A stretch of 63,729 nucleotides of DNA, counting the filler, from Neoconidiobolus thromboides FSU 785 (taxonomy: Eukaryota > Fungi > Entomophthoromycota), in the NCBI GenBank assembly GCA_025603075.1. It is 9 parts of 9 records of this genome, joined end to end, with 100 filler letters (N's around TTAATTAATTAA, not from the genome) between each part and the next. Parts side by side here need not be neighbours in the genome. Positions count along the whole stretch, not along the records: positions 37,608 to 54,708 come from MU626583.1; 8 more parts are not named here. The stretch is one strand, 5' to 3'. Positions within the stretch are counted from its first letter, which is position 1. Every line of letters begins with the position of its first letter. Under the pieces are notes generated by a model, which saw nothing but the letters and a program-made list of their open reading frames with translations, did no database searches and was not told the DNA's origin. The translations under genes and the position numbers were made by a program. Of this stretch, positions 37,508-54,708 are shown in pieces.

Positions 37508-37608
37508 NNNNNNNNNNNNNNNNNNNNNNNNNNNNNNNNNNNNNNNNNNNNTTAATTAATTAANNNNNNNNNNNNNNNNNNNNNNNNNNNNNNNNNNNNN
37601 NNNNNNNC

Positions 37609-37925
37609 TAGTAGTAAAGATTGTTTACTTTTAGAATATAAGATTATTGAGAAACTAAAAGATATTTGTCTTTTACAAAATGATAGCCAGCGTTTGATTG
37701 TTCATAATTTTTAGTTCAAACTTCAAATGTTATTCTTTGATTTAATATTTTGGGTATTTATTGATATTTGATAATACTTTTACTTTTATTCATTCAAAAT
37801 AGTTTGATAGTAGCTATGATTTATTTGATCAGATATTGGACTAACTTGGTAAGCTGTCCAAAGACAACAAGATGTTTTTACTATCTGTTATTGATTTTAC
37901 AATACAAACTGATATCAAGAAATAG
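37609..37925 (+). pseudogene. Zn2Cys6 array member 0: 3' fragment with stops and a frameshift
   Basis: Translates to SKDCLLLEYKIIEKLKDICLLQND...SK*FDSSYDLFDQILD*LGKLSKDNKMFLLSVIDFTIQTDIKK*, which aligns with the C-termini of the intact members. Confidence 0.75.
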
Positions 37926-38414
37926 AATTAAAATAGGCTTGCTCTTACTTAATGATCATATTATCTTTATGATTTTAAGCTGCTAAAAAATGAGCAAACT
38001 ACTAGAATTTTTTTATAAATTATTGGTAAATATAAGGATGACATTGAAATAGTATTACTACCATTAAAAGCACTCAGTTAATTAAGTTCAAAATCTTACA
38101 AAATTTTAATGAATTGTTTATTTTATTTTGTTTAACTACATTAATTTTATCTGAGAATTTTCAATAATGAAAAGTTAATATTGTTAGTGCTTATCTTTAG
38201 TAAAACTTGTAAAAATAAAACTTGTAAATAAAACTGGAAAGTCGAGTCTTATTTGTGATCTTTCCCTTATTTCTATTCTAGTTAGAATTAGGGGGTTAAC
38301 TATTTTGAAAACATACTAAATCAATATTTAAATTGCAATAAAATCTTTTTTACACCCCTTTTATTGCTTAAATTGTATCTTTTAAATAAACGCTTTGAGT
38401 ATCTATAACTAAAG

Positions 38415-40037
38415 ATGAATGAACTATTATTGATAAAACAAATTAGAGTTAGGCAAGCATGTGACCAATGTTATAAAAGAAAACGACGATGCGATTTATC
38501 AATACCCACTTGTAGTGAATGTATAGAAAAGGTACTAGTATGTACAAGGGAACGAAAAACCAAAAGAAAGCCAATTATGTGTGATAATGAAGCTTTTCAT
38601 TCACAAACATTTTTGTTATCTCAGTCAAACAAAACAAGAAAGGAGAAAAAACCAGATAGTATAATAATTCTACTTTATAAATATTTAAATAAATTCAAAA
38701 TATCTGCTGGTGGCAGTCGGTTTAATTCTAGTGTCTCGATTGCCTCTATCTTTCCCATTAAAATGTTTCATTCTCCTATTATATTTGATCAAGGTTTCTA
38801 TTCCTTTTATAAAGTTGCTCCAAATCAATTCCTTGATTTATTTTTCAGTAAAATGCCATTAGTTGAGCCAAAAGATAATATAGTTAAAAAGAATATCAGT
38901 ATTCATAATACTATGCAACAACTTGTAGCTATTTATTTTGAAAGGATCAATATATTATTGCCACTATTCACATATAATCAATTTATAAGTAAGAAGAGAG
39001 ATATGATATTAATCTATTCTATGTTGTTAGTCGCTATAACTCAAAACAATGATAGTGGAAATTTATCAGAATTGAAGGTGCTTTTAAAGGATAAAATGAC
39101 TCATTATTTCCAGCCAAGTCGATTAAAGGTTAACTTAAGCAGTATTCAATCAATGGTCATTTTATTGAATGGATTAAAAGGTAGCAGCTCAGCGCTACCA
39201 TCTTACTATTTTTCAAACTTACATAATCATTGTATGCTATTAGGCCTACATATGAATCATAAAAATAATACCGAACGAAAACTATGTTATTCAGCAGCTT
39301 TATATATTCTTTCTGTAGACGACCCTTATCCTAATTTGTTATTTGATACTCATGATTTATGGAAAAAAAGTAAGATAACACCAGAGTTTAATAAGAATGA
39401 ATCAATTGAAGTAACAATGGAGTCTATAACACTAACATATTCAAATTACTGCTATGATTGTGGATTATTTTATAGGCATTTTTTTGATATCATGTTACAC
39501 ATCGATACATTAAAGTTAAGTAATACAAAGGTATTGAAAATCAGTCATATATTGAAAAAGTTATTGGTTTCTATCACTGAAAAAGTAATGAGTAGATTAG
39601 AAGCTATTAAACAAGCCAATTCAAACAAAGTATTAAATGGCATCATCAATATACTTGTTGATCATATCAAAATAGTTAGTCATTCTGATTGGGTTGGCCT
39701 ATATAGTGTTAAGTGGTCTGCTTTAGGGAGAGATAAGGAAAGCTTATTTACTCAATATGCAGTAAATGAGAAACCAAAAGATTTTACTACCTGGGAAAGC
39801 ATTATTCAATCCTTTATTCTTCATAATTCTAGACTAGAATCGAAATATTATTCCTCTGTTCGATTTTTTGCTCTTTTGCTAATTATCAATAGTGTCTTTG
39901 CTTACTCGAGATGGATAACTAATGCCTCCAGTTTAATTGACCAGTTATTAAATCAATTTAATAGTTTATCTAAAAATGTTAACACGAAGCTAGTACCTGT
40001 TATAGAGCTTGTAGTACAAACCATTAATAAGAAATAA
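38415..40037 (+). CDS. Zn2Cys6 binuclear-cluster transcription factor with middle homology region (array member 1, 540 aa)
   Basis: ACDQCYKRKRRCDLSIPTCSECIEKVLVC (CX2CX6CX6CX2CX6C) and YFERINILLPLF...IQSMVILLNG. Intronless. Confidence 0.93.
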   Translation: MNELLLIKQIRVRQACDQCYKRKRRCDLSIPTCSECIEKVLVCTRERKTKRKPIMCDNEAFHSQTFLLSQSNKTRKEKKPDSIIILLYKYLNKFKISAGGSRFNSSVSIASIFPIKMFHSPIIFDQGFYSFYKVAPNQFLDLFFSKMPLVEPKDNIVKKNISIHNTMQQLVAIYFERINILLPLFTYNQFISKKRDMILIYSMLLVAITQNNDSGNLSELKVLLKDKMTHYFQPSRLKVNLSSIQSMVILLNGLKGSSSALPSYYFSNLHNHCMLLGLHMNHKNNTERKLCYSAALYILSVDDPYPNLLFDTHDLWKKSKITPEFNKNESIEVTMESITLTYSNYCYDCGLFYRHFFDIMLHIDTLKLSNTKVLKISHILKKLLVSITEKVMSRLEAIKQANSNKVLNGIINILVDHIKIVSHSDWVGLYSVKWSALGRDKESLFTQYAVNEKPKDFTTWESIIQSFILHNSRLESKYYSSVRFFALLLIINSVFAYSRWITNASSLIDQLLNQFNSLSKNVNTKLVPVIELVVQTINKK

Positions 40038-40793
40038 ATTTACATAAAAGCATGCTTTTAGTAAAAATTTAATCAACTCTCTTTGGTGTTTATGCTGCTC
40101 AACAAGCCAAAAAAACAAACAAAAGCGATGTTCTTAAAAATGAAATTAGTTTGGTACTGAAATTATTGGTACAGTAATAGAGTGTTCAATATTATTAAGT
40201 TTAGAAAGTTGACTATAATCGAAACTGCACTTTTATATCTTATTAGCCAAAGCTTACTAGTTTTTACTATCGAATTCAAAATAGAGCAAAAAGGAGGTAT
40301 CAAACTAGCTAAAATTTGTTAGAATAAAAAATGTTTTTTGAAGTATGAGTATAAAGTAAAAGTATAAAGCTTCAATGTTAATTATATATATTTGAAGTGA
40401 GAGAATATTAACAGTTGTTAAATACGAAAAGTTTTTGGTTTATTAGTATAATCTTAAAAGCAAGAAAAGGAATACATACATTTTAAGTAATAATTGCTAT
40501 ATTTAAGAATTCAAAGGTTTAATTTCAAGGACTCAATAGGTATGACTTATTAAAACAATTGGTTACAAAATTAATCATGCTTACTTAATTTCGAATTTAC
40601 AAAAATTCAAGTTTAAAAAACCGAATGCAATTTAAGATTTTGCCCATCTCGATTAAACTAATTTAAGTTAGGGATACATATCACTATATAGCTACACTAA
40701 ACATACATTAAGAGTTCGATATATTTTTCCTTTTTGGAAGTTGTAAAATAAAGTACAAATTCAAATTTGCCTTTTGACTATCTATAATTAAAA

Positions 40794-42424
40794 ATGAGTC
40801 AGCTGTTATCAATAAATCAAACTAGAATTTGATCTACATGTAAGGAATGTTATAAACTGAAAAGAGGATCCAGCTTGGTGATTCCTATTTTTAGTAGGTG
40901 TAAGATAAAAAGAACAATATATATGAGGAGTAAAGAAAAAAATAAAAAAACCAATAATGAACAACAATGAAGCTTTTCATTCATAAGCACTTTTATTAAC
41001 CAAGTCGAACAAAATCAAAAAGGAAATAAAACTTAAAGATCTCATAGTTGTAAACAATAAATAATTTAAACAACTCAAAATATCTGGTGGTGGCAGTCGG
41101 TTTAACTCTAATGCCTCAATAGCATCCGTTTTCCCTATCAGAATGTTTGATTCCCCTTTAGTATTTGGTCTAAACTCTAATTTCTTTTATAGCATTGCTT
41201 CAAATAACTTCCTTATAAACTTTTTTTTAGTAACATGCCATCAGTAGAGTCCACATGTGTTATTTTAAAAGGAAAGGCCAAAAGACACTTTAATGTTCTA
41301 TAGCTTATATACATTTATTTTAAAAGCATAAATATATTATTGCCGTTGTTTACCTTCAATCAGTTTACAAGTAATAAAAGAGATTTGACACTGATTGATC
41401 CGATAATGTTGGTTGCTTGACCCGTATTGGTATAGATAATAATTTGTTAAAGTCAAGGCTGAACTTAGAAAATATTTTTCTAGAATATTTTAAACCAAGC
41501 CGACTAAAGGTCAGTTTAAGTAATATTTAATCAGCGGTCACTTCATTAAATAGATTAATAAGAAGTCACTCAGTACTGCCATTCTATCATTTTTTTAACC
41601 TGCACAACTATTGTATATTACTATGCTTGAACTTAGCTATAAAAATGAAATGAAAAGAAAGTTGCGTTACTTGGCAGTAGTATATTTATTGCCATTTGAT
41701 AATTCATATTCTAACCTACTATTCGACACCAATAGTATATAGAAAAAATACAAGGTAATTACAGATATAAATAAAGATGAAGCAGATGAAGCAGATGAAG
41801 CAAGAATGCAATTCATACTATCAACGCATCCAATTTTTTGCTATAATTGCAGTATACATTAAAAACATTATACCAATGCCTTAGTACACATTGATGCCTT
41901 AAATCCAAGCAATACAAAGGTAGTAAAAATCATCTTTTTATTAAAAACTTTATTATATTCTAATATTAAAAAGGTAATGAGTAAGTTAAAAGTTGCTCAA
42001 CAAGCTGCTTCACCCAAACTATCAGGAGATATGGTCAGCATGCCTATTGGTCATATCAGAATAATAAACTACTTGGATAAGGTCGAATTATATAATGTTA
42101 AGTGGTCAAAATTAGGTAAAAAAAGGAAAATTTATACCATAAGTGTTTTTTGAACGTGAGGCTGAATGATCTAGGTATTTAGGAATCCAATATTAAAATT
42201 TTTACCTACTATAAATCTAAACTAGATCGAAAATATTATTCTACTCTTAGGGATTCCGCTTTTTTACTCATTATAAATAGTATTTCTGCTTATACGAGTT
42301 GGGTGAATGATGTTTCCAGTTTGTTTGATCAAATATGTAAGTAACTCAATAAATTGGCTAAAGATATTAGCACGAGGCTATTATCTGTTATTAAGCTTGC
42401 AGTATAAAGTATGAATCATAAATA
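40794..42424 (+). pseudogene. Zn2Cys6 array member 2, full-length pseudogene
   Basis: ATG 40794 MSQLLSINQTRI*STCKECYKLKRGS..., with several Cys lost, many stops and frameshifts. Homologous through to the C-terminus. Confidence 0.88.
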
Positions 42425-42867
42425 AAACTATCACGAACACGTTTTTTGTTTCGGTTTGACTGTATCTTTAGAGTTTATATTATTCAATAAATGATCAGGT
42501 TATCGATACAGCCAAGGATTTCTAAACCACTAGTGCTTAAATAACTATATTAATAAAGAAATGAGAGTGTTCTTCTATCATTTTTCTCTATTTTTTAGAG
42601 TTAAAATTGTATAAAAATTATTGTTAAATGACTGAAAAGATATTTCCATTATAAAGCTAGAAAACTTAAACTAACAAAAAACTTCATAACACCTATAGAT
42701 TATTTTATTTTATGAAAAGTGTTTTGTAACTTCCATTTAATAATTACTATTAAATTTTGGTACTCACTTTATAGATATCATTAAGGACTTTTTTAAAGAA
42801 GTTATATACATGAAAAAATAATTATTGTATTAAAAGACTAACAAAATGTATTCATTTATCGATTATT

Positions 42868-43759
42868 TTAGTTATATTTATGCTTGCATTTTTCATTGAA
42901 CTTGGTAACTCCAGAATCAGTAATTTGAGCAAGCTCGTATGGACGTTGGTCTAGATAATTTTTTTAAATTTAAGCCGGAAATCAAGGATGACATTATTAC
43001 CTGCATTTGCCTTTTCGTCTTCAATTTGATGCACAATATCCATTCCTTTGACTACACGTCCAAATGCTAAATATAAAATGTATTATTCTATACCATTACT
43101 AAATTATTTGTTTTAATTACCAACATATTTCCCATCCAAACGGTGAACATCAACAGTGGTAATAAAGAACTGAACAATCAATAAACTTATTATATTGTCT
43201 ATCAAATATTTACCTGAGAACCATTGGTATCTGGGCCATCATTGGCCATGCTTAAAGTACCATAGTCATGTTTGATGATAAAATTTTCATCTTTAAAGTC
43301 ATGGCCATAGATAGAATGTCCACCATTGCCATCACCAGTAGTAAAGTCACCACCTTGAATCACAAAGTTCTATTCAATTTAAACTTTAATGTTTGTAAAA
43401 TACTGGTAACAATAATCCTACCTTGACTACTCTGTGAAAGTAGCTCCCCTTAAAACCATAACCTAACTAGATTTTAATTAGTATATTATTCATTATAGTA
43501 TTATAATATTTACTTCACCAGTAGATAATATACGAAAGTTTTCAGCTATAATAAAATTAATATAGAAATTTGTTTATACTAAAAGCGAGTTACTTGTTAT
43601 TGGTACGATATTGCCATAGAGACCAAATATAATTCTACCAAGATCTTTATTCCTTAATTTGATATCGAAATAAACATAGCTGGTAAAGTTCATATTTGTT
43701 TGAGCTAAACATAAGCTGGAAAATAATAATGTAGTGGCAGTGAATAAATTGAATTTCAT
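42868..43759 (-). CDS. Secreted/ER cyclophilin (peptidyl-prolyl isomerase B-like), multi-exon
   Basis: Signal peptide, [69 protein letters not shown] and [11 protein letters not shown]. Confidence 0.92.
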
Positions 43760-44463
43760 TATTTTAATATTAATTAAAAATAAAAGATAAGAAAGTATAA
43801 AAACCTAATTTGTGTTTTTTTCCAAAGCTTCCTTTAATTTTTTGAGATAATTTTAGTAAGCTTAATAACCTTGTTTTAAGAATATGTTATTATTGGGTTT
43901 ATTAAGTGATTAGATTATTCAGTAAATTAAAATTAGTGTAACTACGAAAAACAGGCAGTAATTTACTATTTGATTGGTGTAGTATACTTTTTGTACCATC
44001 ACAAAAATTATATAAAAGTTGGTATAGGAAAAATAAATATATTCAATTGGTCAAAGATCATAGTACAAAAATTTTACTACAGTAATTAGATAGCAGAATA
44101 GTGCTTGTTTTTTCGTATTTTGTTATATTATTTCTTTTACCTCATGCTCAAGATTAAAGTTATTTTTATATTTTGTAAGTTGCAGATTCTAGTCAGTTAG
44201 GATGAACCCGTGCTTACATTTCAAGAAAACTTTTGAATGATATAAATCCAAGCAAGATTGGAGTATTATTTATAGATCATGAGCACTTTTTATGGCGCTT
44301 TTTAAGGAGCTATGATACAATAAGAGTAAAATAAAAATATAATTTTACATAAAATTCTAGCTAATACAAAGAAAATTTACATGTTAGTTTTATTTTAAAT
44401 ACCATAAATATTAAAAGCTATTAATATTTAAACTACCTATAATAATTAATTAAAACTTATATA

Positions 44464-44570
44464 ATATGGGGATGTATTTTTGTATTTAAGAATTTTACTA
44501 ACAATTTTTCTGTTCAAATAGCGCTTAAAAAGTGGAAAAGTAATGAAACCAAAAAAAACACTCCCATATA
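44464..44570 (+). mobile_element. MITE family A
   Basis: ATATGGGGATGTATTTTTGTATTTAAGAATTTTACTAACAATTTTTC...AAAAAAACACTCCCATATA. Confidence 0.9.
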
Positions 44571-44671
44571 ATACTTTTAAATAAGGCCTCAAATAATATA
44601 GAACAAAATTAAGCTTTTTTATATTTATTACACAATGATATACATAATTTTAAAAAACATTTAGCTTATTT

Positions 44672-44776
44672 ATATAGAGATGTTTTTTGGCTTCATTACT
44701 TTTTCTATCTTTTAAGCGCTACTTGAATAGAAAAACTGTTAGTAAAATTCTTGAACAAAAAGATACATCTTCATAT
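44672..44776 (-). mobile_element. MITE family A
   Basis: ATATAGAGATGTTTTTTGGCTTCATTACT...GATACATCTTCATAT. Confidence 0.88.
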
Positions 44777-44970
44777 GGTAAATTACAAATTTAAAGTAAT
44801 TATTTTTAATGCTCGTTGTTAATAAGATTTATAAATTTAAAATTGGGAGTAGTACTAATTTAAAACCTTACTCAAACACGAATATCAATAAATGAAAATG
44901 AATACTACTAGGTACTGAAATATTTATGTTTAAGTTCATTTTTGAATTCCAGGTACTATTTATACATACA

Positions 44971-45074
44971 ATATGCGGATGTATTTTCGTGTTTAAGAAT
45001 TTTACTAACTAATTTTCCGCTTAAATAGCGCTTAAAAAATGGAAAAAATAATGAAGTTAAAAACAATCCCATAT
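44971..45074 (+). mobile_element. MITE family A
   Basis: ATATGCGGATGTATTTTCGTGTTTAAGAATTTTACTAAC...CAATCCCATATA. Confidence 0.88.
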
Positions 45075-45334
45075 AATAAATTTTTGATAACTGCTTTTAT
45101 TGAGGCTTTTTTTTACTAATGCTTTGACTTTTTTGATTGGTTTTTCCTTTCTTCCCATAATATTTACTACCTTATTTGCCTCTATATAGGTCAAATGAAC
45201 TATTTTTTAAGTTAAAAAAGCAAATTGAATAAATATACTTTAATTTAGTCTATATCGAAACTTTAATAAGGTTTTTTATAACTTTACCACGCAAAGTTTC
45301 TAAATTAAGTTTATTTGAAGATTCATGATTGAAG

Positions 45335-46957
45335 ATGAATGAAGCGTTATCAATAAATCAAACTAGAATTAGATCAGCGTGTGATGAATGCTATAGAGTA
45401 AAAAGAGGATGCGATTTGTCAATACCCACTTGTAGTAGATGCAAAGGGAAAGGAAAGATATGTACAAGGGAACGACAAAATAACCGAAGGCCAAAAATGA
45501 ATAACAATGATGATTTTCATTCAAAAATGTTTCTATTGTCTCAACCAAGCAAAGCGAAAAAGGAAATAAAAGTTAGAAATACCATAGTTATAAACAACAG
45601 ATATTTCAATCAGTTTAAAATTCCATCAGGCGGTGATCGCTTTGATTCCAGTGTTTCGGTTGCCTCTATTTTCCCCATTAAAATGTATCATTCCACCTTA
45701 ATTTTCAATCAAAGTACTTATTTTCTTTATAAAATTGCGCCAAATCAGTTTCTTATTAAATTCTTTAGTAAAATGCCACCAGTGGAGTCGGGAAATAAGA
45801 TTATGAAAAGAAACATCAACGTACATTATAGTGTACCACAACTTATATATGCTTATTTCGAAAGGATTAATATCATGTTGCCCCTATTTACTTGTAGTAT
45901 ATTTTTTAGTAAGAAAAGAGATATCAGGCTAATCTATTCCATAATGTTAGTGACTTTAACTCAAACTAGTTGTGGTGAAAACTTAACGTACCTAAAAGCG
46001 TTCCTGAAGCATAAATTGTTAAAGCATTTCCATCCGAGTCGATTAAAAATAAAATTAAGTAGTATACAATCAATGGTGATACTATTAAATGGATTAAAAG
46101 GAAGTAGCTTGGCATTACCATCTTATTATTTCTCGAACTTACATAACTATTGTATATTGTTGGGTCTACATTTGAATCATAAAAACAGTATTGAAAGGAA
46201 ATTATGCTATTCAGCAGTATTGTACTTACTTTCTTTTGATGACCCTTACTCTAATTTTTCATTTGACACTCATGATTTATGGAAACAAGATAATGCTGTG
46301 CTGGCGTTAAAAAAGAACGAGTCAATTGAATCTATAATGAAGAGTATTTTTTTAGTGTATTCTAGTTATTGCTATAAATGTGGTTTACTTTATAAGAATT
46401 TTTTTGATACCACGATGCACATTAATATACTAAATATCACTAATGCAAAGGCGCTAAAAATTGGTACTTTGTTAATAGCTTTATTGAATCATGCCACTGA
46501 AATGGCAACAGCTAAATACTCAATAATTAAGAGAACTATTTCGAACAAAATATTATACGAAACTATTGATATTATCACGAGCCATATTAAAATCATTCAT
46601 CATTCCACTTGGATACTTTTACATAACATTCTGTGTTTAGCATCCAATAGTAATAAAGAGAATTTATTCTCCAGATATATACTAAGAAACAAACCAAAAG
46701 ATATGGATCTTTTAGAAGAGAACATACAATCTTTTATCGTTTATAGCTTCAATTTAAAATCCAAATATTATTCTTCGATTCGACTTTTTACCTTTTTGTT
46801 AGTTATCAATAGTATTTCCTCTTATTCAAAATGGATTACCAATGCTTCCACCTTACTTGATCAGGTATTGAGTCAATTTGACAACTTAACCAAAGATAAT
46901 AATATGGGTTTAGTATCTGCTATTAACCGTATAATACAAGTTGCCATTAAAAAATAG
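45335..46957 (+). CDS. Zn2Cys6 transcription factor (array member 3, 540 aa from ATG 45335)
   Basis: ACDECYRVKRGCDLSIPTCSRCKGKGKIC; same register as members 1, 4 and 5. Confidence 0.93.
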   Translation: MNEALSINQTRIRSACDECYRVKRGCDLSIPTCSRCKGKGKICTRERQNNRRPKMNNNDDFHSKMFLLSQPSKAKKEIKVRNTIVINNRYFNQFKIPSGGDRFDSSVSVASIFPIKMYHSTLIFNQSTYFLYKIAPNQFLIKFFSKMPPVESGNKIMKRNINVHYSVPQLIYAYFERINIMLPLFTCSIFFSKKRDIRLIYSIMLVTLTQTSCGENLTYLKAFLKHKLLKHFHPSRLKIKLSSIQSMVILLNGLKGSSLALPSYYFSNLHNYCILLGLHLNHKNSIERKLCYSAVLYLLSFDDPYSNFSFDTHDLWKQDNAVLALKKNESIESIMKSIFLVYSSYCYKCGLLYKNFFDTTMHINILNITNAKALKIGTLLIALLNHATEMATAKYSIIKRTISNKILYETIDIITSHIKIIHHSTWILLHNILCLASNSNKENLFSRYILRNKPKDMDLLEENIQSFIVYSFNLKSKYYSSIRLFTFLLVINSISSYSKWITNASTLLDQVLSQFDNLTKDNNMGLVSAINRIIQVAIKK

Positions 46958-47079
46958 AACTGATTTTGACTTGGTTTTAAATCCTTCAAAGCTCAAAAAT
47001 CCAAGTGTTTATTTGAATAAAATAGAATTATAGAGAAATGAGCTTATTTTTTAGTTTTATTAAAATGGGTTAGCTCCAA

Positions 47080-47530
47080 GTGTTTTATTTGCAACAATAA
47101 TTTCTAAATACACAAGTAGCTAGCTTACCGAATACAAACCTATCAATAGATAATTTCTGGAAGGGTGGTTGTTGTGTTCAGAATTTTCCTACTCTTACTA
47201 GAGCCAAAGAAGCGCAATATCGTTGATCAAATCTCAGTCTTCTAGAGAGCCGTGTATTGACTAGTACTGTCAATATAATTCAAGAGGTAGATGTAATTGG
47301 GTTTAGGGTAAAACTGTAAAAAAAGTTCATACGGATTGATTATAAGTTCATTGAGGGGATCAAAGTTCTACTGAGCTAGATAGAGATGATAAGTAAGTTG
47401 AGAGTCCATGAGAATGAAAGAGTAACGTTGGCTAGTATGAGACCCAGGTCAGGATGTTTGACAATAAAGGGTCAAAAAAAGAGCTACTGAGCAAGACAAG
47501 AAGCGATGAACAGAGTTACACTCCTTTGTT
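47080..47530 (-). pseudogene. Possible decayed 3' end of a non-LTR retrotransposon ORF2
   Basis: GC-richer block. One minus frame reads ECNSVHRFLSCSVA...AL*KTEI, weakly like the H.F..C..A / W..R tail of LINE ORF2. Many stops. Confidence 0.2.
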
Positions 47531-48983
47531 TTTAAATTTAATGAATTTTTGAATTTTATACTACTTATAAAATGGTTAAAAGTTGAAACAACAAAAGAAT
47601 ATTTCAAAAGTTCCTTATATAGTTAAAAAGTGTTTAAAACTATTTTATTGATATAGTAAGCTTAAAAATTTGTATAAAGTCACCAGTATATTTTCAATTT
47701 AATTTAAACTTAAAAGATTATAAACGATTTTAAAGCTCAAAAAACAAGTATTTTTTCCTATTGATAGTTTTCTATTTACCATAATAGAAATAAATATAAG
47801 AAAGAACCAGAACCTTGACTTGAACAAATACATACCGTATTAATACAGTTGCGAACAATAGACTTTATTAAATCATCAAATTAAAAATTTATTTTATTTT
47901 GATTTTTCCAAAGTGATTTATTAGTCTTAGTTTTTAAATTAAATTAAATTATTTTTATATTTTAATAACCATTATATAGAAAATATTGTATACTAAAAAA
48001 AGTTAGATAGTTTTGTAAGTTTTTAATTATTATATAGTAAGGCAACAGTGAAATTAAATTAATTTAATATAGAAAATCTGCTTTTATTTAACTTATTAAA
48101 CTAAAACGTGGAATATATACATATAAAAAGAAATAAAATTTTATTTGAAATTGAAAGCTATTAAATGGCAGTTTATCATTAAAATTAGTTATTGAAAAAG
48201 TGTACAATCAAATTGAGATATTAAAGCTATAAATTTTTGTATATTAAATGTTATTTATCGTCTTCATTCTGAAAAAACCTTTTGGGATACTTTTTATATG
48301 TAGCAGTGCTATGACAGAAGCAAACAATTAAATCTAAAAATAACCAAAATATTGAAAGCGTTCTTAAGAACTAAAAAGTGTATAAAAAGTATTATTTAAT
48401 ATGATTTACAGAAAAAATTATATTATTAACTATTTCATCATTATTTGCACTACTATGACAGAGGTAAAAGTCCAATATATTATTAATTAGAGATATCTAA
48501 TTTATATTGTTGTTCTAAGAAAATTGGTTATTATCACTATTAAAATAGTCTGTAAATTCCAAATATTAATAAATCTTCTATTAGGTTGTTCATTATATTT
48601 CAGATACCTTCATTCAAATTTATTGCTGGTTTTTTTATCTGAATTTAAGGATTACATGGAATCATATACTTTTAAATTCAATTAAAATCAACGTATTTAA
48701 ACGGGTAGTGTACTGAAACATAATGACCTAATATCAGTTCTTGAATCAATTTTGGCTTATTATGGCATTTTTAACTTTTTTTAGTTGATTTTCTCCCTTC
48801 CCATAATTTTCGCAGTATCCGTTTTGCCTCTTATTTAGTCTATCTGTAAGTTGAAAAACAAGTCAAAATTTTAGTATGCAAGCCACTCAAATTTATTTTA
48901 AAACCCAAACTTCATTATCATATCAATTGTTTTTTGTAAAAATAGTGGACTGGATCTATATTTTTTGGGTTTTATAATCAAAA

Positions 48984-50606
48984 ATGAGTGAACCACTATC
49001 AATAGTTCAAGTAAGGATTAGACCAGCATGTGATGAATGTTATAGAGTGAAAAGAAGATGTGATTCAACTATTCCTATTTGTAGTAGGTGTAAATTGAGA
49101 GGAAAAAAGTGTACAAGAAATAGAAAGAGTAGTCGAAAACCAAGGATGCACAACAATGAAGATTTTCATTCACAAACATTTTTATTATCTCAAACAAATA
49201 AAGTAAAAAGGAAAATAAAATTTAAAAGCATAATCATTTTAAACCATAGATATTTTAACCAGTACAAAATTTCTGTGGGCGGTAGCAGGTTTGACTCTAA
49301 TACTTCAATGGCATCTGTTTTTCCTATCAAAATGTTTCATTCCCCTTTAATATTTGATCAAACTTCTTATTTCTTTTATAACGCTGCACCAAATCAATTC
49401 CTTATTAGCTTCTTCAGTAAAATGCCATCAGTACCGTCAAAATCTAATACGTTAGAAGGAAAAGTCAACATACATCATAGATTGCCACAGCTTATATCTA
49501 CCTATTTTGAAAAGGTTAATGTATTATTACCGCTATTTACTTACAATCAATTTATGAGTAAGAAAAGAGACGTGATATTGATTTGTTCTATAATGCTAGT
49601 TGCATTAACACATATCGATGATAGCGATGAGTTATCGTATACAAAAACATTTTTGAAAGATAAATTGTTAAAACATTTCCAACCAAGTCGATTGAAGATC
49701 AATTTAAGTAATATTCAATCGATGGTTATTTTGTTAAATGGACTAAAAGGGAGTAGTTCGGCTTTGCCATCTTACTATTTTTCCAATTTAAACAATTACT
49801 GTGTGCAATTAGGCTTACATTTGAATTGTAAAAACGATATTGAAAGGAAACTATGCTATTCAGCAGCAGTATTTTTACTTTCTATAGATGATTCATACTC
49901 GAACTTATCATTTGATACCCACAGCTTATGGAAAAATGACAACATATCGCTCAAATTAAGTAGTACTATATCAACTGAAGTGATAATGCAATCAATAATG
50001 CTAACCTATTCCAACTATTGTTATAGATGCGGTTTGGTATTTAAGAACTTTTTTGATGCTACGATGCATATTAATGTACTAAATATAACCAATGCAAAAA
50101 CAATAAAAATTAGCTATTTATTAGAAAATTTAATGAACACTACCACAGAAACGGCGATAAGTAGATTAGGGATGATCAAAAAAGCTGCATTATGTAAATC
50201 ATTGTCTGACACCATTAACGTCATTATTGGTCATATAAAGATTATTCATCATTCTAGTTGGTCACTTATATACAATATTAGATGTTTAGCATCATTTAAC
50301 AACAGGGATTTTTTGTTCTCTAGATATATAATAAAAGAGAAACCAAAAGATGCCCATCTTTTAGAAGATAATATTCAGTCATTTATGTATCACAGTTCGA
50401 ATTTGAAATCTAAATATTATTCGTCAATGCCATTCTTTGCCTTTTTAATAATAATTGATATTATCTCTGCTTACTCGAATTGGATAACTAATGGTCCTGC
50501 TTTGCTTGATCAAATATTAGATCAATTTGATTTACTATCTAAAAACAATAATATGAGATTGGTATCTGCTATTAACCTTATAGTACAAATTGCTGTTAAA
50601 AAATAA
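48984..50606 (+). CDS. Zn2Cys6 transcription factor (array member 4, 540 aa)
   Basis: ACDECYRVKRRCDSTIPICSRCKLRGKKC; same register as the other intact members. Confidence 0.93.
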   Translation: MSEPLSIVQVRIRPACDECYRVKRRCDSTIPICSRCKLRGKKCTRNRKSSRKPRMHNNEDFHSQTFLLSQTNKVKRKIKFKSIIILNHRYFNQYKISVGGSRFDSNTSMASVFPIKMFHSPLIFDQTSYFFYNAAPNQFLISFFSKMPSVPSKSNTLEGKVNIHHRLPQLISTYFEKVNVLLPLFTYNQFMSKKRDVILICSIMLVALTHIDDSDELSYTKTFLKDKLLKHFQPSRLKINLSNIQSMVILLNGLKGSSSALPSYYFSNLNNYCVQLGLHLNCKNDIERKLCYSAAVFLLSIDDSYSNLSFDTHSLWKNDNISLKLSSTISTEVIMQSIMLTYSNYCYRCGLVFKNFFDATMHINVLNITNAKTIKISYLLENLMNTTTETAISRLGMIKKAALCKSLSDTINVIIGHIKIIHHSSWSLIYNIRCLASFNNRDFLFSRYIIKEKPKDAHLLEDNIQSFMYHSSNLKSKYYSSMPFFAFLIIIDIISAYSNWITNGPALLDQILDQFDLLSKNNNMRLVSAINLIVQIAVKK

Positions 50607-51102
50607 AATTGATATGGGTTTATTTTTCAATCCAGTTTTATAAGAGGTTTTTAAATTTTAAGCTGCTTAAGAAATGACAAATCATGTAAGTTAAAAGTAC
50701 TTCTAAATATCAAATAAATTGTCACATATCTGATAAACTCACATTGAAATAACATAATATTTAATATGGGGTATATTTAAAAAAGGATTAAAGCTATAAA
50801 AAAGTTGCCCAATTTTTAGTTCAAATTTAAAAATATCATTATCTAACTTTGATCTACAACTAAACTGTATTTCTTTAACTTACCTTTTATCCGCAAAATT
50901 CGCAAAAAATTAAAAATAGAAAAAAAATTATGCCTTAGATTTCAACTAACCAATATCAACAATGCTAATTTCAGTGAGGAAGATTTATTGTTATATGGCC
51001 ACTCTTAGAATCATGTATAGATTGTTATAAATATTTGATTTATCAATTCGCTTTGTAAAGGTACCAAGTAAAGTATATATTCTTTAGTGTCTATGATAAA
51101 AG

Positions 51103-52725
51103 ATGTGGCAGTCACAAACAATAATTCAAACTAGGATTAGATCAGCGTGTGATGAATGTCATAGAACAAAAAGAGGATGTGATTTAACAATACCATCTTG
51201 TAGTGGGTGTAAAGAAAAAGAAGTAGTATGTACAAGAGATAGAAAAATCAAGAGAAAGCCAAGAATGTACAACAATGAGGACTTTCATTCAAAAACCTTC
51301 TTATTATCCCGGTCAACTAGAACTAAAAGGGAAGAAAGAGTTGAGGGTGAGGTAATTTTAAATCACAAATATTTTAGTCAGTTCATAATTTCTTCAAATG
51401 GTGCTCGGGTTAATTCTAATAACTCTATTGGCTCTTTCTTTCCCATTAAATTATTTCATTCTCCTGCTGTATTAGATGAAAACTTATATTCAATTTATAA
51501 GTTTGCTCCAAATCAATCCCTCAGTTTATTTTTTGATAAATTGCCTTCAATTGAGTCAAAATTTTCTATTGTAAAGGGAAGTATCAATGTTTACAATACT
51601 ATGTCACAACTTATAACTATTTATTTTCAAAGAATCAATATAATATTACCACTATTCACTTATAATCAATTCATAAGTAAAGAAAGAGATAAAATATTAA
51701 TTTATTCTATGATGTTAGTTGCTTTAGCTCGGAGTAAAGATAGAAAAAATTTATTGGACTTTGAAATATTTTTAAAGAATAAATTATTAAACTATTTCAA
51801 ACCAAGTCGATTGAAGATCAACTTAAGCAGCATTCAAACAATGATTATTTTATTGAACGGATTAAAAGGCAGTAGCTTGGCGCTACCATCTTATTATTTT
51901 TCAAACTTACACAATCATTGCATATTATTGGGTTTACATTTAAATCATAAGAATGATATTGAAAGAATGTTGTGTTATTCAGCAGCGGTATATTTACTCT
52001 CAGTTGATGACCCTTATTCTACTTTGCTATTTGATACTCATGACTTGTGGAAAAAAGAAAAGACAATATTAAAACTAAGTGAGAATGAATCAGTTGAAGT
52101 AATAATGCAATTAATAATATCAATCTACTCAAATTACTGTTATAAGTGCGGTTTGTATTACAAACATTATTTTGATCCTTTATTACACATCAATGTATTA
52201 AATATAACTAATGAAAAAACAATAAAGTTCAATCCTTTGTTACAAAAATTATTGGATTCTATTACTGAACGAGTAGTAAGTAAATTAGAAGCTATTAAAC
52301 AAGACGTTTCGAATAAAGTAGTAGGTAACATCATTAACATACTTATTGACCATATCAAAATAATTTATTACTCTAACTGGGTTGAGTTATATTGTATTAA
52401 GTGGGCAGCATTAGATAGCGACAAAGAAGATTTATTTATTGACTTTTCACTGAACAAGGAGCCAAAGGATTTATCTATTTTAGAAAAGAATATTCAGTTG
52501 TTTATTATTCATAACCATAATCTGAAATCAAAATATTATTCTTCAACTCGGTTCTTCGCCTATTTACTAATTATTTTTTGCATTAAAATTTATTCAAAGT
52601 GGATGCCCAATGCTTCTGAGTTATTGAATCAAGTATTGGATCAATTTAATAAGTTATCTAAAGATATTAATCCAAGCATAAAGTCGGTTATCAATCTCAT
52701 AGTCCAATTTGCTAAAAAGGATTGA
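51103..52725 (+). CDS. Zn2Cys6 transcription factor (array member 5, 540 aa)
   Basis: ACDECHRTKRGCDLTIPSCSGCKEKEVVC; same register as the other intact members. Confidence 0.93.
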   Translation: MWQSQTIIQTRIRSACDECHRTKRGCDLTIPSCSGCKEKEVVCTRDRKIKRKPRMYNNEDFHSKTFLLSRSTRTKREERVEGEVILNHKYFSQFIISSNGARVNSNNSIGSFFPIKLFHSPAVLDENLYSIYKFAPNQSLSLFFDKLPSIESKFSIVKGSINVYNTMSQLITIYFQRINIILPLFTYNQFISKERDKILIYSMMLVALARSKDRKNLLDFEIFLKNKLLNYFKPSRLKINLSSIQTMIILLNGLKGSSLALPSYYFSNLHNHCILLGLHLNHKNDIERMLCYSAAVYLLSVDDPYSTLLFDTHDLWKKEKTILKLSENESVEVIMQLIISIYSNYCYKCGLYYKHYFDPLLHINVLNITNEKTIKFNPLLQKLLDSITERVVSKLEAIKQDVSNKVVGNIINILIDHIKIIYYSNWVELYCIKWAALDSDKEDLFIDFSLNKEPKDLSILEKNIQLFIIHNHNLKSKYYSSTRFFAYLLIIFCIKIYSKWMPNASELLNQVLDQFNKLSKDINPSIKSVINLIVQFAKKD

Positions 52726-53703
52726 AGTCATTTTTGGCACGCTTTCATAAGGATTTAATATTCCCCCTGTTCTTAAAAATCATAAAAGCAACAATTTTTT
52801 GGCGTTTGCCTAACATGGCAGTATTTTGTTCCTTTAAATATCAGAAGGTGTATCTATGAGGTAAATCTAGGAAAGAAGAAAGAACAGTTAGTCAAATCTT
52901 AGCCTGAGAAACGGGCTGTGAAGGAATCAGTTATCAGACTAGGAAGCTAGATGTAAATCGACAGTATTAATTAACTATTTAATTATTTTAAAAAGCACTT
53001 AGCCTTAATTTTCGCTAGGGTAGTGGACAAAAGTGTGTCCATATTTATTAGTTAGTATTTTAGAAATTTTAAAGTAAAATAAATTAAAAAATTATATTTA
53101 TAGAGTAATAATTCAATCTTATTTTAAAGTCATCTAAATTACATCTTTAGTATATTTGATGTAATTTTTGATATTTTTATCATTGATATAAGTTTGAACA
53201 AAATCCATAATTAAAGTTCATAGTATGTTGTACTATGATCGAATTTATTTAACTTGGCTATTAGGAAAAACCTGCTGAAAGACATGCAGTGGAAAGCTTT
53301 TTGGAGTAATAGTAAATATAGTACTATTACATTAATAGATAATCTATAATTTTATACACCTCCTGTCTTAAAAATTGAATAAATTAATAAAAAAACTTTG
53401 ATAGCAATTGAATCCAAAGGTAAATAAAAACAAAATACTATTATGAAAAACATGATGTCATTAATCATAATTGAATTAATTTTATTATAGTGTGTTTTAT
53501 TTTTGTTTACTTTAGATTTAACTATTATCAAGGAAATCTTATATCAGTTTGGTCAAATATTAAAAAATGCATGTATAATATTGAAAATCCTGTACCCTGT
53601 ATGCTTTTGATTTATAAAACAGGATAAAATTTTTAGGACTTTAGCATTCATTTGAGGCAAGATTAGCTTAATTTTGAAATATGTTTTGGGAAAATGGCCT
53701 TAC

Positions 53704-53807
53704 ATATGGGGATATATTTTATGTTTAACAATTTTATTAACAATTTTTCCGCTCAAATAGTGCTTAGAGGATGGAAAAGGTAATGAGCCAAAAAAACATA
53801 CCCATAT
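53704..53807 (+). mobile_element. MITE family A
   Basis: ATATGGGGATATATTTTATGTTTAAC...TTTTTCCGCTCAAATAGTGCTTAG...AAAAAAACATACCCATAT. Confidence 0.88.
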
Positions 53808-53983
53808 TAATATCATTGAATCAGCAAGTTATTTTAAAAAATGACTTATGATTAACAAAGCTTTCTAAGCATGAAGATTGTACTTAAATACAAAGTTAAT
53901 TGATATAACTCTTAGTAATATTAGTCTACACTATTAAAAACTAAACCTTCAACTCTATATCTTTTCAGTTTTAATAAGCGAGG

Positions 53984-54708
53984 ATGAATGTGATAACACT
54001 TTAATAAAGCTAGGATTAGACAAGCATGCGATCAATGTTACAAAGGTAAAAGGCAATGTAATTTATCAGTACCTATTTGTAGTTATTGTAAAAAACAAGG
54101 AAAGGTATGTACAGGGGAACGAAAAAGTAATAGAAGAGCAAAGGTATATAATGATGAAGAAATTCACTCAAAGACATTTTCATCATCTCAATCAAATAAA
54201 GCAAGGAGAGAAATTATTTTTAAGAGCACCATAATTTTAAACCATAGGTATTTTGGTCAGTCTAAAATTCGAGCGGGTGGAAATCGATCTGATTCTAATA
54301 CCTCCATTGCCTCTTTTTTCCCCATCAAAATGTTTCATTCTCCTGTTATGTTTGATCAAAGCTCTTATTCCTTTTATAATGTTGCTCCAAATCAATATCT
54401 CAATTCATTTTTTAATAAACTGCCATCAGTTAAGTCAGAATCTACTGCTATAAAAAGTAGCGTTAGCATTTGTAATATAATGCCACAACTTATAACTCTT
54501 TATTTTCAGAGATATAACACGTTACTACCATTATTCACTTATAATCAATTTATAAATAAGAAAAGAGACAAGATGTTAATTTATTCTATTATGTTAGTTA
54601 GCTTAACTGCGACCAATGATAGTCAAGATTTGCTGAACTTGAAAGTATTTTTAAAAGATAAGCTATTAGAACATTTCCAACCGAGTAAGTTAAAAATTAG
54701 CTTAAGTA
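53984..54708 (+). CDS. Zn2Cys6 array member 6, 5' half (gap-truncated); one frameshift right after the ATG, either real or a homopolymer error
   Basis: ATG 53984 MNVITL, then a frameshift into NKARIRQACDQCYKGKRQCNLSVPICSYCKKQGKVC...FPIKMFHSP...FQPSKLKISLS up to the gap. Confidence 0.8.

Follow-up and report, generated by a model that had tools for sequence, protein, structure and literature searches.

A tandem array of lineage-restricted Gal4-type zinc-cluster transcription factor genes in Neoconidiobolus thromboides, probably old and stable

Zinc-cluster (Zn2Cys6) transcription factors are the signature regulators of the Dikarya and are thought to be mostly dispersed in early-diverging fungi. 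In KRAB zinc-finger clusters, genes lie in tandem on the same strand, with intact genes and pseudogenes mixed and no homogenisation among them. Among the zinc-cluster proteins, the Gal4-type factors combine PF00172 with PF04082 and include Gal4, Lac9, AfoA and CtnR, with Cep3 as the solved full-length fold. Zinc clusters form a minor class in zygomycete lineages (PMC5415576), and the expansion of the Zn2Cys6 family in Aspergillus nidulans has been ascribed mainly to dispersed rather than tandem duplication (PMC8396895). The FTF1 report describes multi-copy Zn2Cys6 genes that are exclusive to Fusarium oxysporum, are closely related to the single-copy FTF2, and regulate virulence and the expression of SIX effectors (PMC6638452); the accessory chromosomes of F. 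oxysporum also show an expansion of transcription factors (PMC9934661). Here we describe the contig MU626583.1 (17,101 bp) of the insect-associated N. thromboides FSU 785 (assembly GCA_025603075.1), which occupies positions 37608-54708 of the window, i.e. of the whole stretch of 63,729 nucleotides, filler included, that was analysed; positions given without a contig name count along this window. The contig carries a lineage-specific, tandemly expanded subfamily of transcription factor genes in an unusual arrangement, which we read, at a probability of roughly 80%, as an old and stable array of Gal4-type factors with occasional gene death. Our literature search on tandem Zn2Cys6 arrays and on the zinc clusters of Entomophthoromycotina, whose coverage is incomplete, brought up no comparable array.

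Searches with the intact proteins (tblastn) and with a DNA profile built on nine intact family members both recover exactly seven copies on the contig, all on the + strand and arranged head to tail, in agreement with the seven same-strand paralogues that the original prediction had placed in these 17 kb. Four of the seven are intact and three are damaged or cut. The intact copies are continuous, intronless open reading frames (ORFs) of 540 aa on the + strand in the ORF listing, each with PF00172, and begin where the prediction had put them, namely: copy 1 (Z1; 38415-40037), copy 3 (Z3; 45335-46957), copy 4 (Z4; 48984-50606) and copy 5 (Z5; 51103-52725). The other three, likewise on the + strand, are copy 0 (37610-37924), copy 2 (40794-42425) and copy 6 (53984-54708). 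Successive copies, from copy 1 onwards, are spaced by 2380, 4540, 3649, 2119 and 2879 bp, and these spacings were recovered independently by a repeat finder. The DNA profile finds no further hidden copies in the long intergenic gaps of the contig.

The identity of the encoded proteins was examined at the level of motif, homology and predicted fold. The cysteine pattern CX2CX6CX6CX2CX6C is present in all nine intact family members and fits the Zn2Cys6 motif CX2CX6CX5-12CX2CX6-8C near the N-terminus, with the same six-cysteine spacing as in the Gal4-type factors. In the four intact array copies, PF00172 scores 22.6-29.5 bits (gathering cut-off 21), with 29.5 bits for copy 1, in which the cluster spans residues 16-43. 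The N-terminus aligns without gaps to the DNA-binding domains of Gal4 and Lac9, and the six cysteines, the conserved proline and the equivalent of Gal4 Lys18 are all kept. The lysine, which we take to be a DNA-contact residue in the published Gal4-DNA structure, is present in eight of the nine intact copies, and the remaining one has R at this position. A sequence profile search of the PDB matches Lac9, Gal4, Cep3, Ppr1, Hap1 and Put3. In addition, the family profile aligns to relatives from the Entomophthorales with an hhalign probability of 99.8% over 479 columns, and three of these relatives carry PF04082 over the matching region. The AlphaFold 2 (AF2) model that we used was built from a 27-sequence alignment, an earlier one from the 9-sequence family alignment being unusable (predicted local distance difference test, pLDDT, 41.8). 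It has a predicted template modelling score (pTM) of 0.69, both the zinc cluster and a helical region at residues 161-520 being modelled with confidence, and it matches full-length Zn2Cys6 factors, including Gal4, at a probability of 1.00 in AlphaFold DB/Swiss-Prot. Foldseek against the PDB returns a high probability for Cep3 chains only, and no match there reaches E 0.001 or better.

Taken together, sequence comparison and modelling identify the array proteins as Gal4-type Zn2Cys6 factors of ordinary architecture with what is probably a diverged middle-homology (regulatory) domain, which upholds the class originally assigned to them. Their architecture and predicted fold agree with those of the Gal4-type factors over the whole length, but they differ from them in that the helical domain lies beyond direct Pfam detection and no obvious coiled coil is seen after the cluster, in that residues 53-160, although conserved, are of low confidence and carry motifs of the family, and in that the genes are in tandem and restricted to one species. 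This low-confidence segment of the model (e.g. window 38571-38894) contains two family-invariant motifs, FPIK.FHS and YK.APNQ, that are not found in the relatives, and it may serve for interaction or dimerisation in a way peculiar to this family.

The age of the array and the selection acting on it were assessed from the intact genes. These share 54-64% of their residues and encode proteins of 538-547 aa. The pairwise proportion of synonymous differences (pS) is 0.52-0.71, with every pair at 0.52 or above. Given a G+C content at third codon positions of ~0.25, we estimate the saturation level at ~0.69; thus most pairs are saturated at synonymous sites. Pairwise dN/dS is 0.15-0.29, and a maximum-likelihood codon model gives an omega of 0.21 with a tree length of 9.1 substitutions per codon. 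When nonsynonymous differences (pN) are related to synonymous ones by region, the helical core, which is the most conserved region, has the lowest pN/pS (0.26), the zinc-cluster region (57% identity among copies) has 0.41, and the maximum, 0.49, is found in the C-terminal half of the helical domain (46-48% identity). The protein tree has the shape of a star with long terminal branches, and the array copies form no clade in it, being interleaved with copies from other contigs; the neighbouring copies 3 and 4 are the only clear sisters among the array copies (support 100/99). The identity level, the shape of the tree and the interleaving with other contigs together indicate that the copies diverge independently and are not homogenised. 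The sole young duplicate pair is formed by copy 6 and the copy on contig L006, with a pS of 0.04 and a pN of 0.024 over 360 nt, both copies being incomplete. The surviving copies have evolved under purifying selection with their length almost fixed, and the duplications are old enough for synonymous saturation.

These results bear directly on the interpretation first proposed for the array, namely that it is a rapidly turning-over, arms-race repertoire akin to KRAB zinc-finger genes, in which new copies keep arising and are selected for novel specificities directed at transposons or at host or xenobiotic cues. Several features would suit such a repertoire: the array is tandem, holds pseudogenes and is interleaved with miniature inverted-repeat transposable elements (MITEs); the family is limited to one species in public data; the zinc-cluster region is no more than 57% identical among copies; and the one young duplicate pair includes an array member that is possibly already disabled. 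However, both high turnover and an arms race are contradicted by the saturated synonymous sites, the star-like tree with its long end branches, the invariant protein length, the single young pair and a collinear stretch of 6 kb without structural difference among three DNA data sets (see below). Both are also at odds with an omega of about 0.2, with uniform purifying selection and with the retention of the Lys18 equivalent as K or R; furthermore, the MITEs are found throughout the genome rather than in the array alone. In contrast to KRAB clusters, the array gives no sign that copies were born recently, that selection was positive or that strains differ in structure. We thus consider the arms-race interpretation very unlikely. 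What stands of the original prediction is birth-and-death in the broad sense, i.e. tandem paralogues, independent divergence and pseudogenes among intact genes.

A search for further members of the subfamily and a gene tree had been proposed in the original prediction; the tree is the star-like one described above, and the searches give nine complete genes in the species, four on the array contig and five on other contigs. In addition, there is an open N-terminal part on L006, together with at least five pseudogenes or fragments, and copies are found on at least seven contigs. A second array is present on contig L005, where three copies lie in tandem, one of them a pseudogene, one intact and one a 5' fragment. 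The segments L003:8446-8679 and L006:1-234 overlap end to end at 100% identity and the two contigs could be merged, which would link two further copies as a tandem pair. Beyond N. thromboides, a profile search run exhaustively over 1.84 billion representatives returned four proteins at E 1e-30 or better, all from this species, and the best foreign matches, from Massospora cicadina and Entomophthora muscae, were at E 4.7e-19 and weaker. The named hits of the protein search were likewise all from N. thromboides FSU 785. On the evidence of these sequence searches, the subfamily is seen only in N. thromboides among the public data searched.

The tandem arrangement is indeed atypical, as had been supposed. 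The more distant relatives P0011, P0015, P0012 and P0017 of the same genome are solitary, with no family neighbour within 8-10 kb. The paralogue groups of A. nidulans (PMC8396895) resemble the present subfamily in having arisen by duplication followed by divergence, with occasional pseudogenes, but they are dispersed, whereas N. thromboides has at least three tandem loci. The likeness to FTF1 lies in the amplification of one Zn2Cys6 lineage in one species, in repeat-rich, MITE-bearing DNA; the difference is that the array copies are ancient, 54-64% identical and head to tail, with no link to virulence genes seen.

The spread of copies over at least seven contigs could also be taken to mean that the 540-aa ORF is part of a selfish or mobile unit, either transposon-borne or retroposed, all the more so since the ORFs are intronless, yet the neighbouring cyclophilin gene has six introns, and several copies are pseudogenes. 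This is extremely improbable in our view. The likeness between copies ends ~25 nt beyond the ORF, the units are without flanking terminal repeats, the copies within any one array all point the same way, and there are no near-identical bursts; the omega of 0.21 indicates constraint at the level of the host. Moreover, the solitary outparalogue P0011 is intronless too, so that the lack of introns is not special to the subfamily, and the predicted fold places the proteins among the ordinary Gal4-type factors.

The three damaged or cut copies differ in their state. Copy 2 (40794-42425), described originally as a full-length pseudogene, is one: tblastn reveals 5 frameshifts, ~10 in-frame stops and the loss of three of the six zinc-binding cysteines. 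Its frameshifts recur in the Logan DNA contigs of two other runs and are thus not errors of one assembly. Copy 0 (37610-37924) matches codons ~439-540 in tblastn and positions 1315-1622 of the DNA profile, and contains in-frame stops and a frameshift. The claim of a 3' pseudogene fragment at this position holds in so far as the sequence is a decayed 3' end; however, the copy begins at the contig edge, and its status as a fragment may therefore be an effect of the assembly. Copy 6 (53984-54708) comprises the first ~242 codons, as found by tblastn, and is then cut by the contig end, as anticipated. In addition, the coding sequence on L006, to which it is 97% identical, shows that the copy as assembled has a 2-bp deletion right after its ATG; this ATG and the zinc cluster are thus in different frames, and the cluster has no in-frame start, the frame being otherwise open. 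Some copies have died at different times, with two very old pseudogenes on the array contig and possibly one young one.

The near-identity of some pieces raises the question of whether part of the copy number is an assembly effect, i.e. whether these pieces are alternative haplotypes of one locus. The left end of the 5-kb contig L002 (L002:1-355) matches the left end of the array contig (window 37627-37981) at 99.2% identity; past this segment the two have nothing in common, L002 running on to a different family member; the coding sequence on L006, for its part, is 97% identical to copy 6 but has a different upstream sequence, and both ends of the array contig fall inside family copies. Such a haplotype origin cannot apply to the seven array copies among themselves, whose proteins are 54-64% identical, and the differences of 0.8-3% between the near-identical pieces exceed the 0.07-0.3% seen between the data sets compared with the window. 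For a part of the copy number, we hold it to be a real possibility, though the lesser one. The likeness at the left end to L002 could reflect either the recent duplication of a segment or haplotypes that differ in structure.

For the comparison between strains, which covers 6 kb and near-identical strains, the DNA contigs of runs X2 and X4 were aligned to the window. Over 38415-44400 both are collinear with it in one piece and differ from it at 4 and 16 sites (0.07% and 0.3%), with one A-run indel inside the pseudogene. The original prediction had suggested comparing copy number and synteny across strains; no structural change is present in X2 or X4 over this interval, and turnover is not seen in it. 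At window 40935, inside the pseudogene, an A-run is one A longer in both X4 (DNA) and X6 (RNA); this difference and the single-nucleotide polymorphisms common to the two data sets suggest that they belong to one strain type.

Expression, which the original prediction had left to RNA sequencing, was followed in RNA contigs of the same organism. One such contig covers copy 1, the spacer and the pseudogene (copy 2), so that both an intact member and an old pseudogene are represented in RNA. The contig lacks a 54-nt GT..AG interval on the + strand of the pseudogene (41916-41969). The corresponding joint, 41915>41970, occurs in the RNA contigs of X5 and X6, from two studies, and not in DNA runs X2 or X4. 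The counterpart of 41916-41969 is coding in the intact paralogues, and the interval is either a cryptic intron of the transcribed pseudogene or one that it has newly gained. In the RNA run, the cyclophilin gene is fully spliced and nothing is seen of 42615-42814 and 43815-44400; the signal thus comes from RNA rather than from contaminating DNA. Farther along the array, 43-54% of the words sampled from 45335-52725 recur in the RNA contigs, pooled over this stretch, of which 66% is coding, indicating that at least some of copies 3-5 are transcribed.

These results show that the subfamily arose by duplication, at least some of which was local and on the same strand, as seen from the sister relationship of the neighbouring copies 3 and 4 and from the tandem copies on other contigs. 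Each protein has an N-terminal Zn2Cys6 cluster, followed by a linker for which disorder is predicted and by a helical domain that is probably a diverged middle-homology domain. DNA would be bound through the zinc cluster, probably at CGG-type half-sites, given that the six cysteines, the conserved proline and the Gal4 Lys18 equivalent have all been kept in the sequence. The helical domain may then control activity, and the paralogues may have divided sets of targets among them or acquired different ones. The locus shows that a subfamily with about 10 intact genes took shape independently in a species of the Zoopagomycota, for the most part through tandem duplication, and it provides a dated, constrained example of the growth of a regulator repertoire outside the Dikarya.

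A number of observations weigh against this proposal. PF04082 is not detected directly by Pfam in the intact copies (E up to 0.1), and membership of the middle-homology class is drawn from remote homology and a predicted fold. The AF2 model contains no evident coiled-coil dimerisation element and no long helix after the zinc cluster, the pLDDT being below 50 at residues 53-138 and 144-160. Neither CGG..CCG pairs nor enriched non-AT 8-mers were found as a shared promoter signal in the intergenic DNA of the array; the missing CGG..CCG pairs mean that autoregulation via classical sites is not indicated. Per-gene expression is resolved for copy 1 and the pseudogene only. Finally, the notion of an old and stable array is derived from sequence divergence and from strains that are nearly identical, and the young duplicate pair and the near-identical alternative contig end (L002) show that the region is not entirely static.

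A bolder interpretation, for which we see an outside chance, is that the array constitutes a diversified repertoire of sensors, by analogy with expanded nuclear receptors or Pdr1/Upc2-like regulators. The conserved zinc cluster would provide a common DNA grammar, and the more variable C-terminal half of the helical domain would be tuned to different small molecules or partners met on insect hosts or in soil. If true, the repertoire would be a regulatory innovation of this lineage of the Entomophthoromycotina, kept in tandem for co-regulation. Besides correcting the arms-race interpretation, the analysis brings to light errors of annotation, in which single genes are split into two models, and an assembly that is collapsed or branched near the array. 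With regard to the annotation, copy 4 is publicly annotated as two products of 52 aa and 392 aa, and P0013 and P0009 map to its two ends. The gene at L005:9839-11472 is likewise split in the public annotation, into a 51-52-aa zinc-cluster protein and a C-terminal protein, though it too is one continuous ORF (540/544 aa for the two genes). Judging from the continuous ORFs, both split annotations (copy 4, 48984-50606, and L005:9839-11472) are probably gene-model errors.

A leader of ~25 nt (roughly CTTTGAGTATCTATAAYTAAAG) is kept before the ATG of most copies, including the pseudogene (e.g. 38390-38414, 40769-40793 and 51078-51102), and beyond it the upstream DNA cannot be aligned among copies. 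The G+C content of the array contig is 27%. The 2-kb spacer between copies 3 and 4 (46958-48983) has no ORF of 60 aa or more and no family remnant, and it contains a local G+C minimum of 0.20. Scans of the contig with Rfam and for tRNA genes were empty, and a tandem-repeat finder returned two trivial short repeats only.

The cyclophilin (peptidyl-prolyl isomerase) gene interleaved with the array, whose presence had been noted originally, lies on the - strand at 42871-43759 and is expressed. Its 7 exons are separated by six GT..AG introns of 44-54 nt, each of which is confirmed by an RNA joint; its product matches PF00160 at E 1.5e-9 and begins with a signal-like peptide at the N-terminus. The interleaved MITEs were also borne out, at two sites. 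Three copies of ~108 bp are clustered at 44441-45090, two direct and one inverted (repeat families D10 and I1-I3; terminal inverted repeat alignment), and a solo copy, found by the repeat finder and the same kind of alignment, is at 53698-53817; neither site is assigned a strand. The family is ~108 bp long with 12-bp terminal inverted repeats (ATATGGGGATGT...), and its copies are often adjacent or nested. MITEs are abundant on every other contig examined (many sites on L001-L005) and are thus not specific to the array. Another dispersed repeat of ~400-500 bp, with 81-91% identity, occurs at L002:4147-4647, L001:1-397, L004:25-358 and L007:736-1334, and thereby links several contigs on which members of the family or the outparalogue are found.

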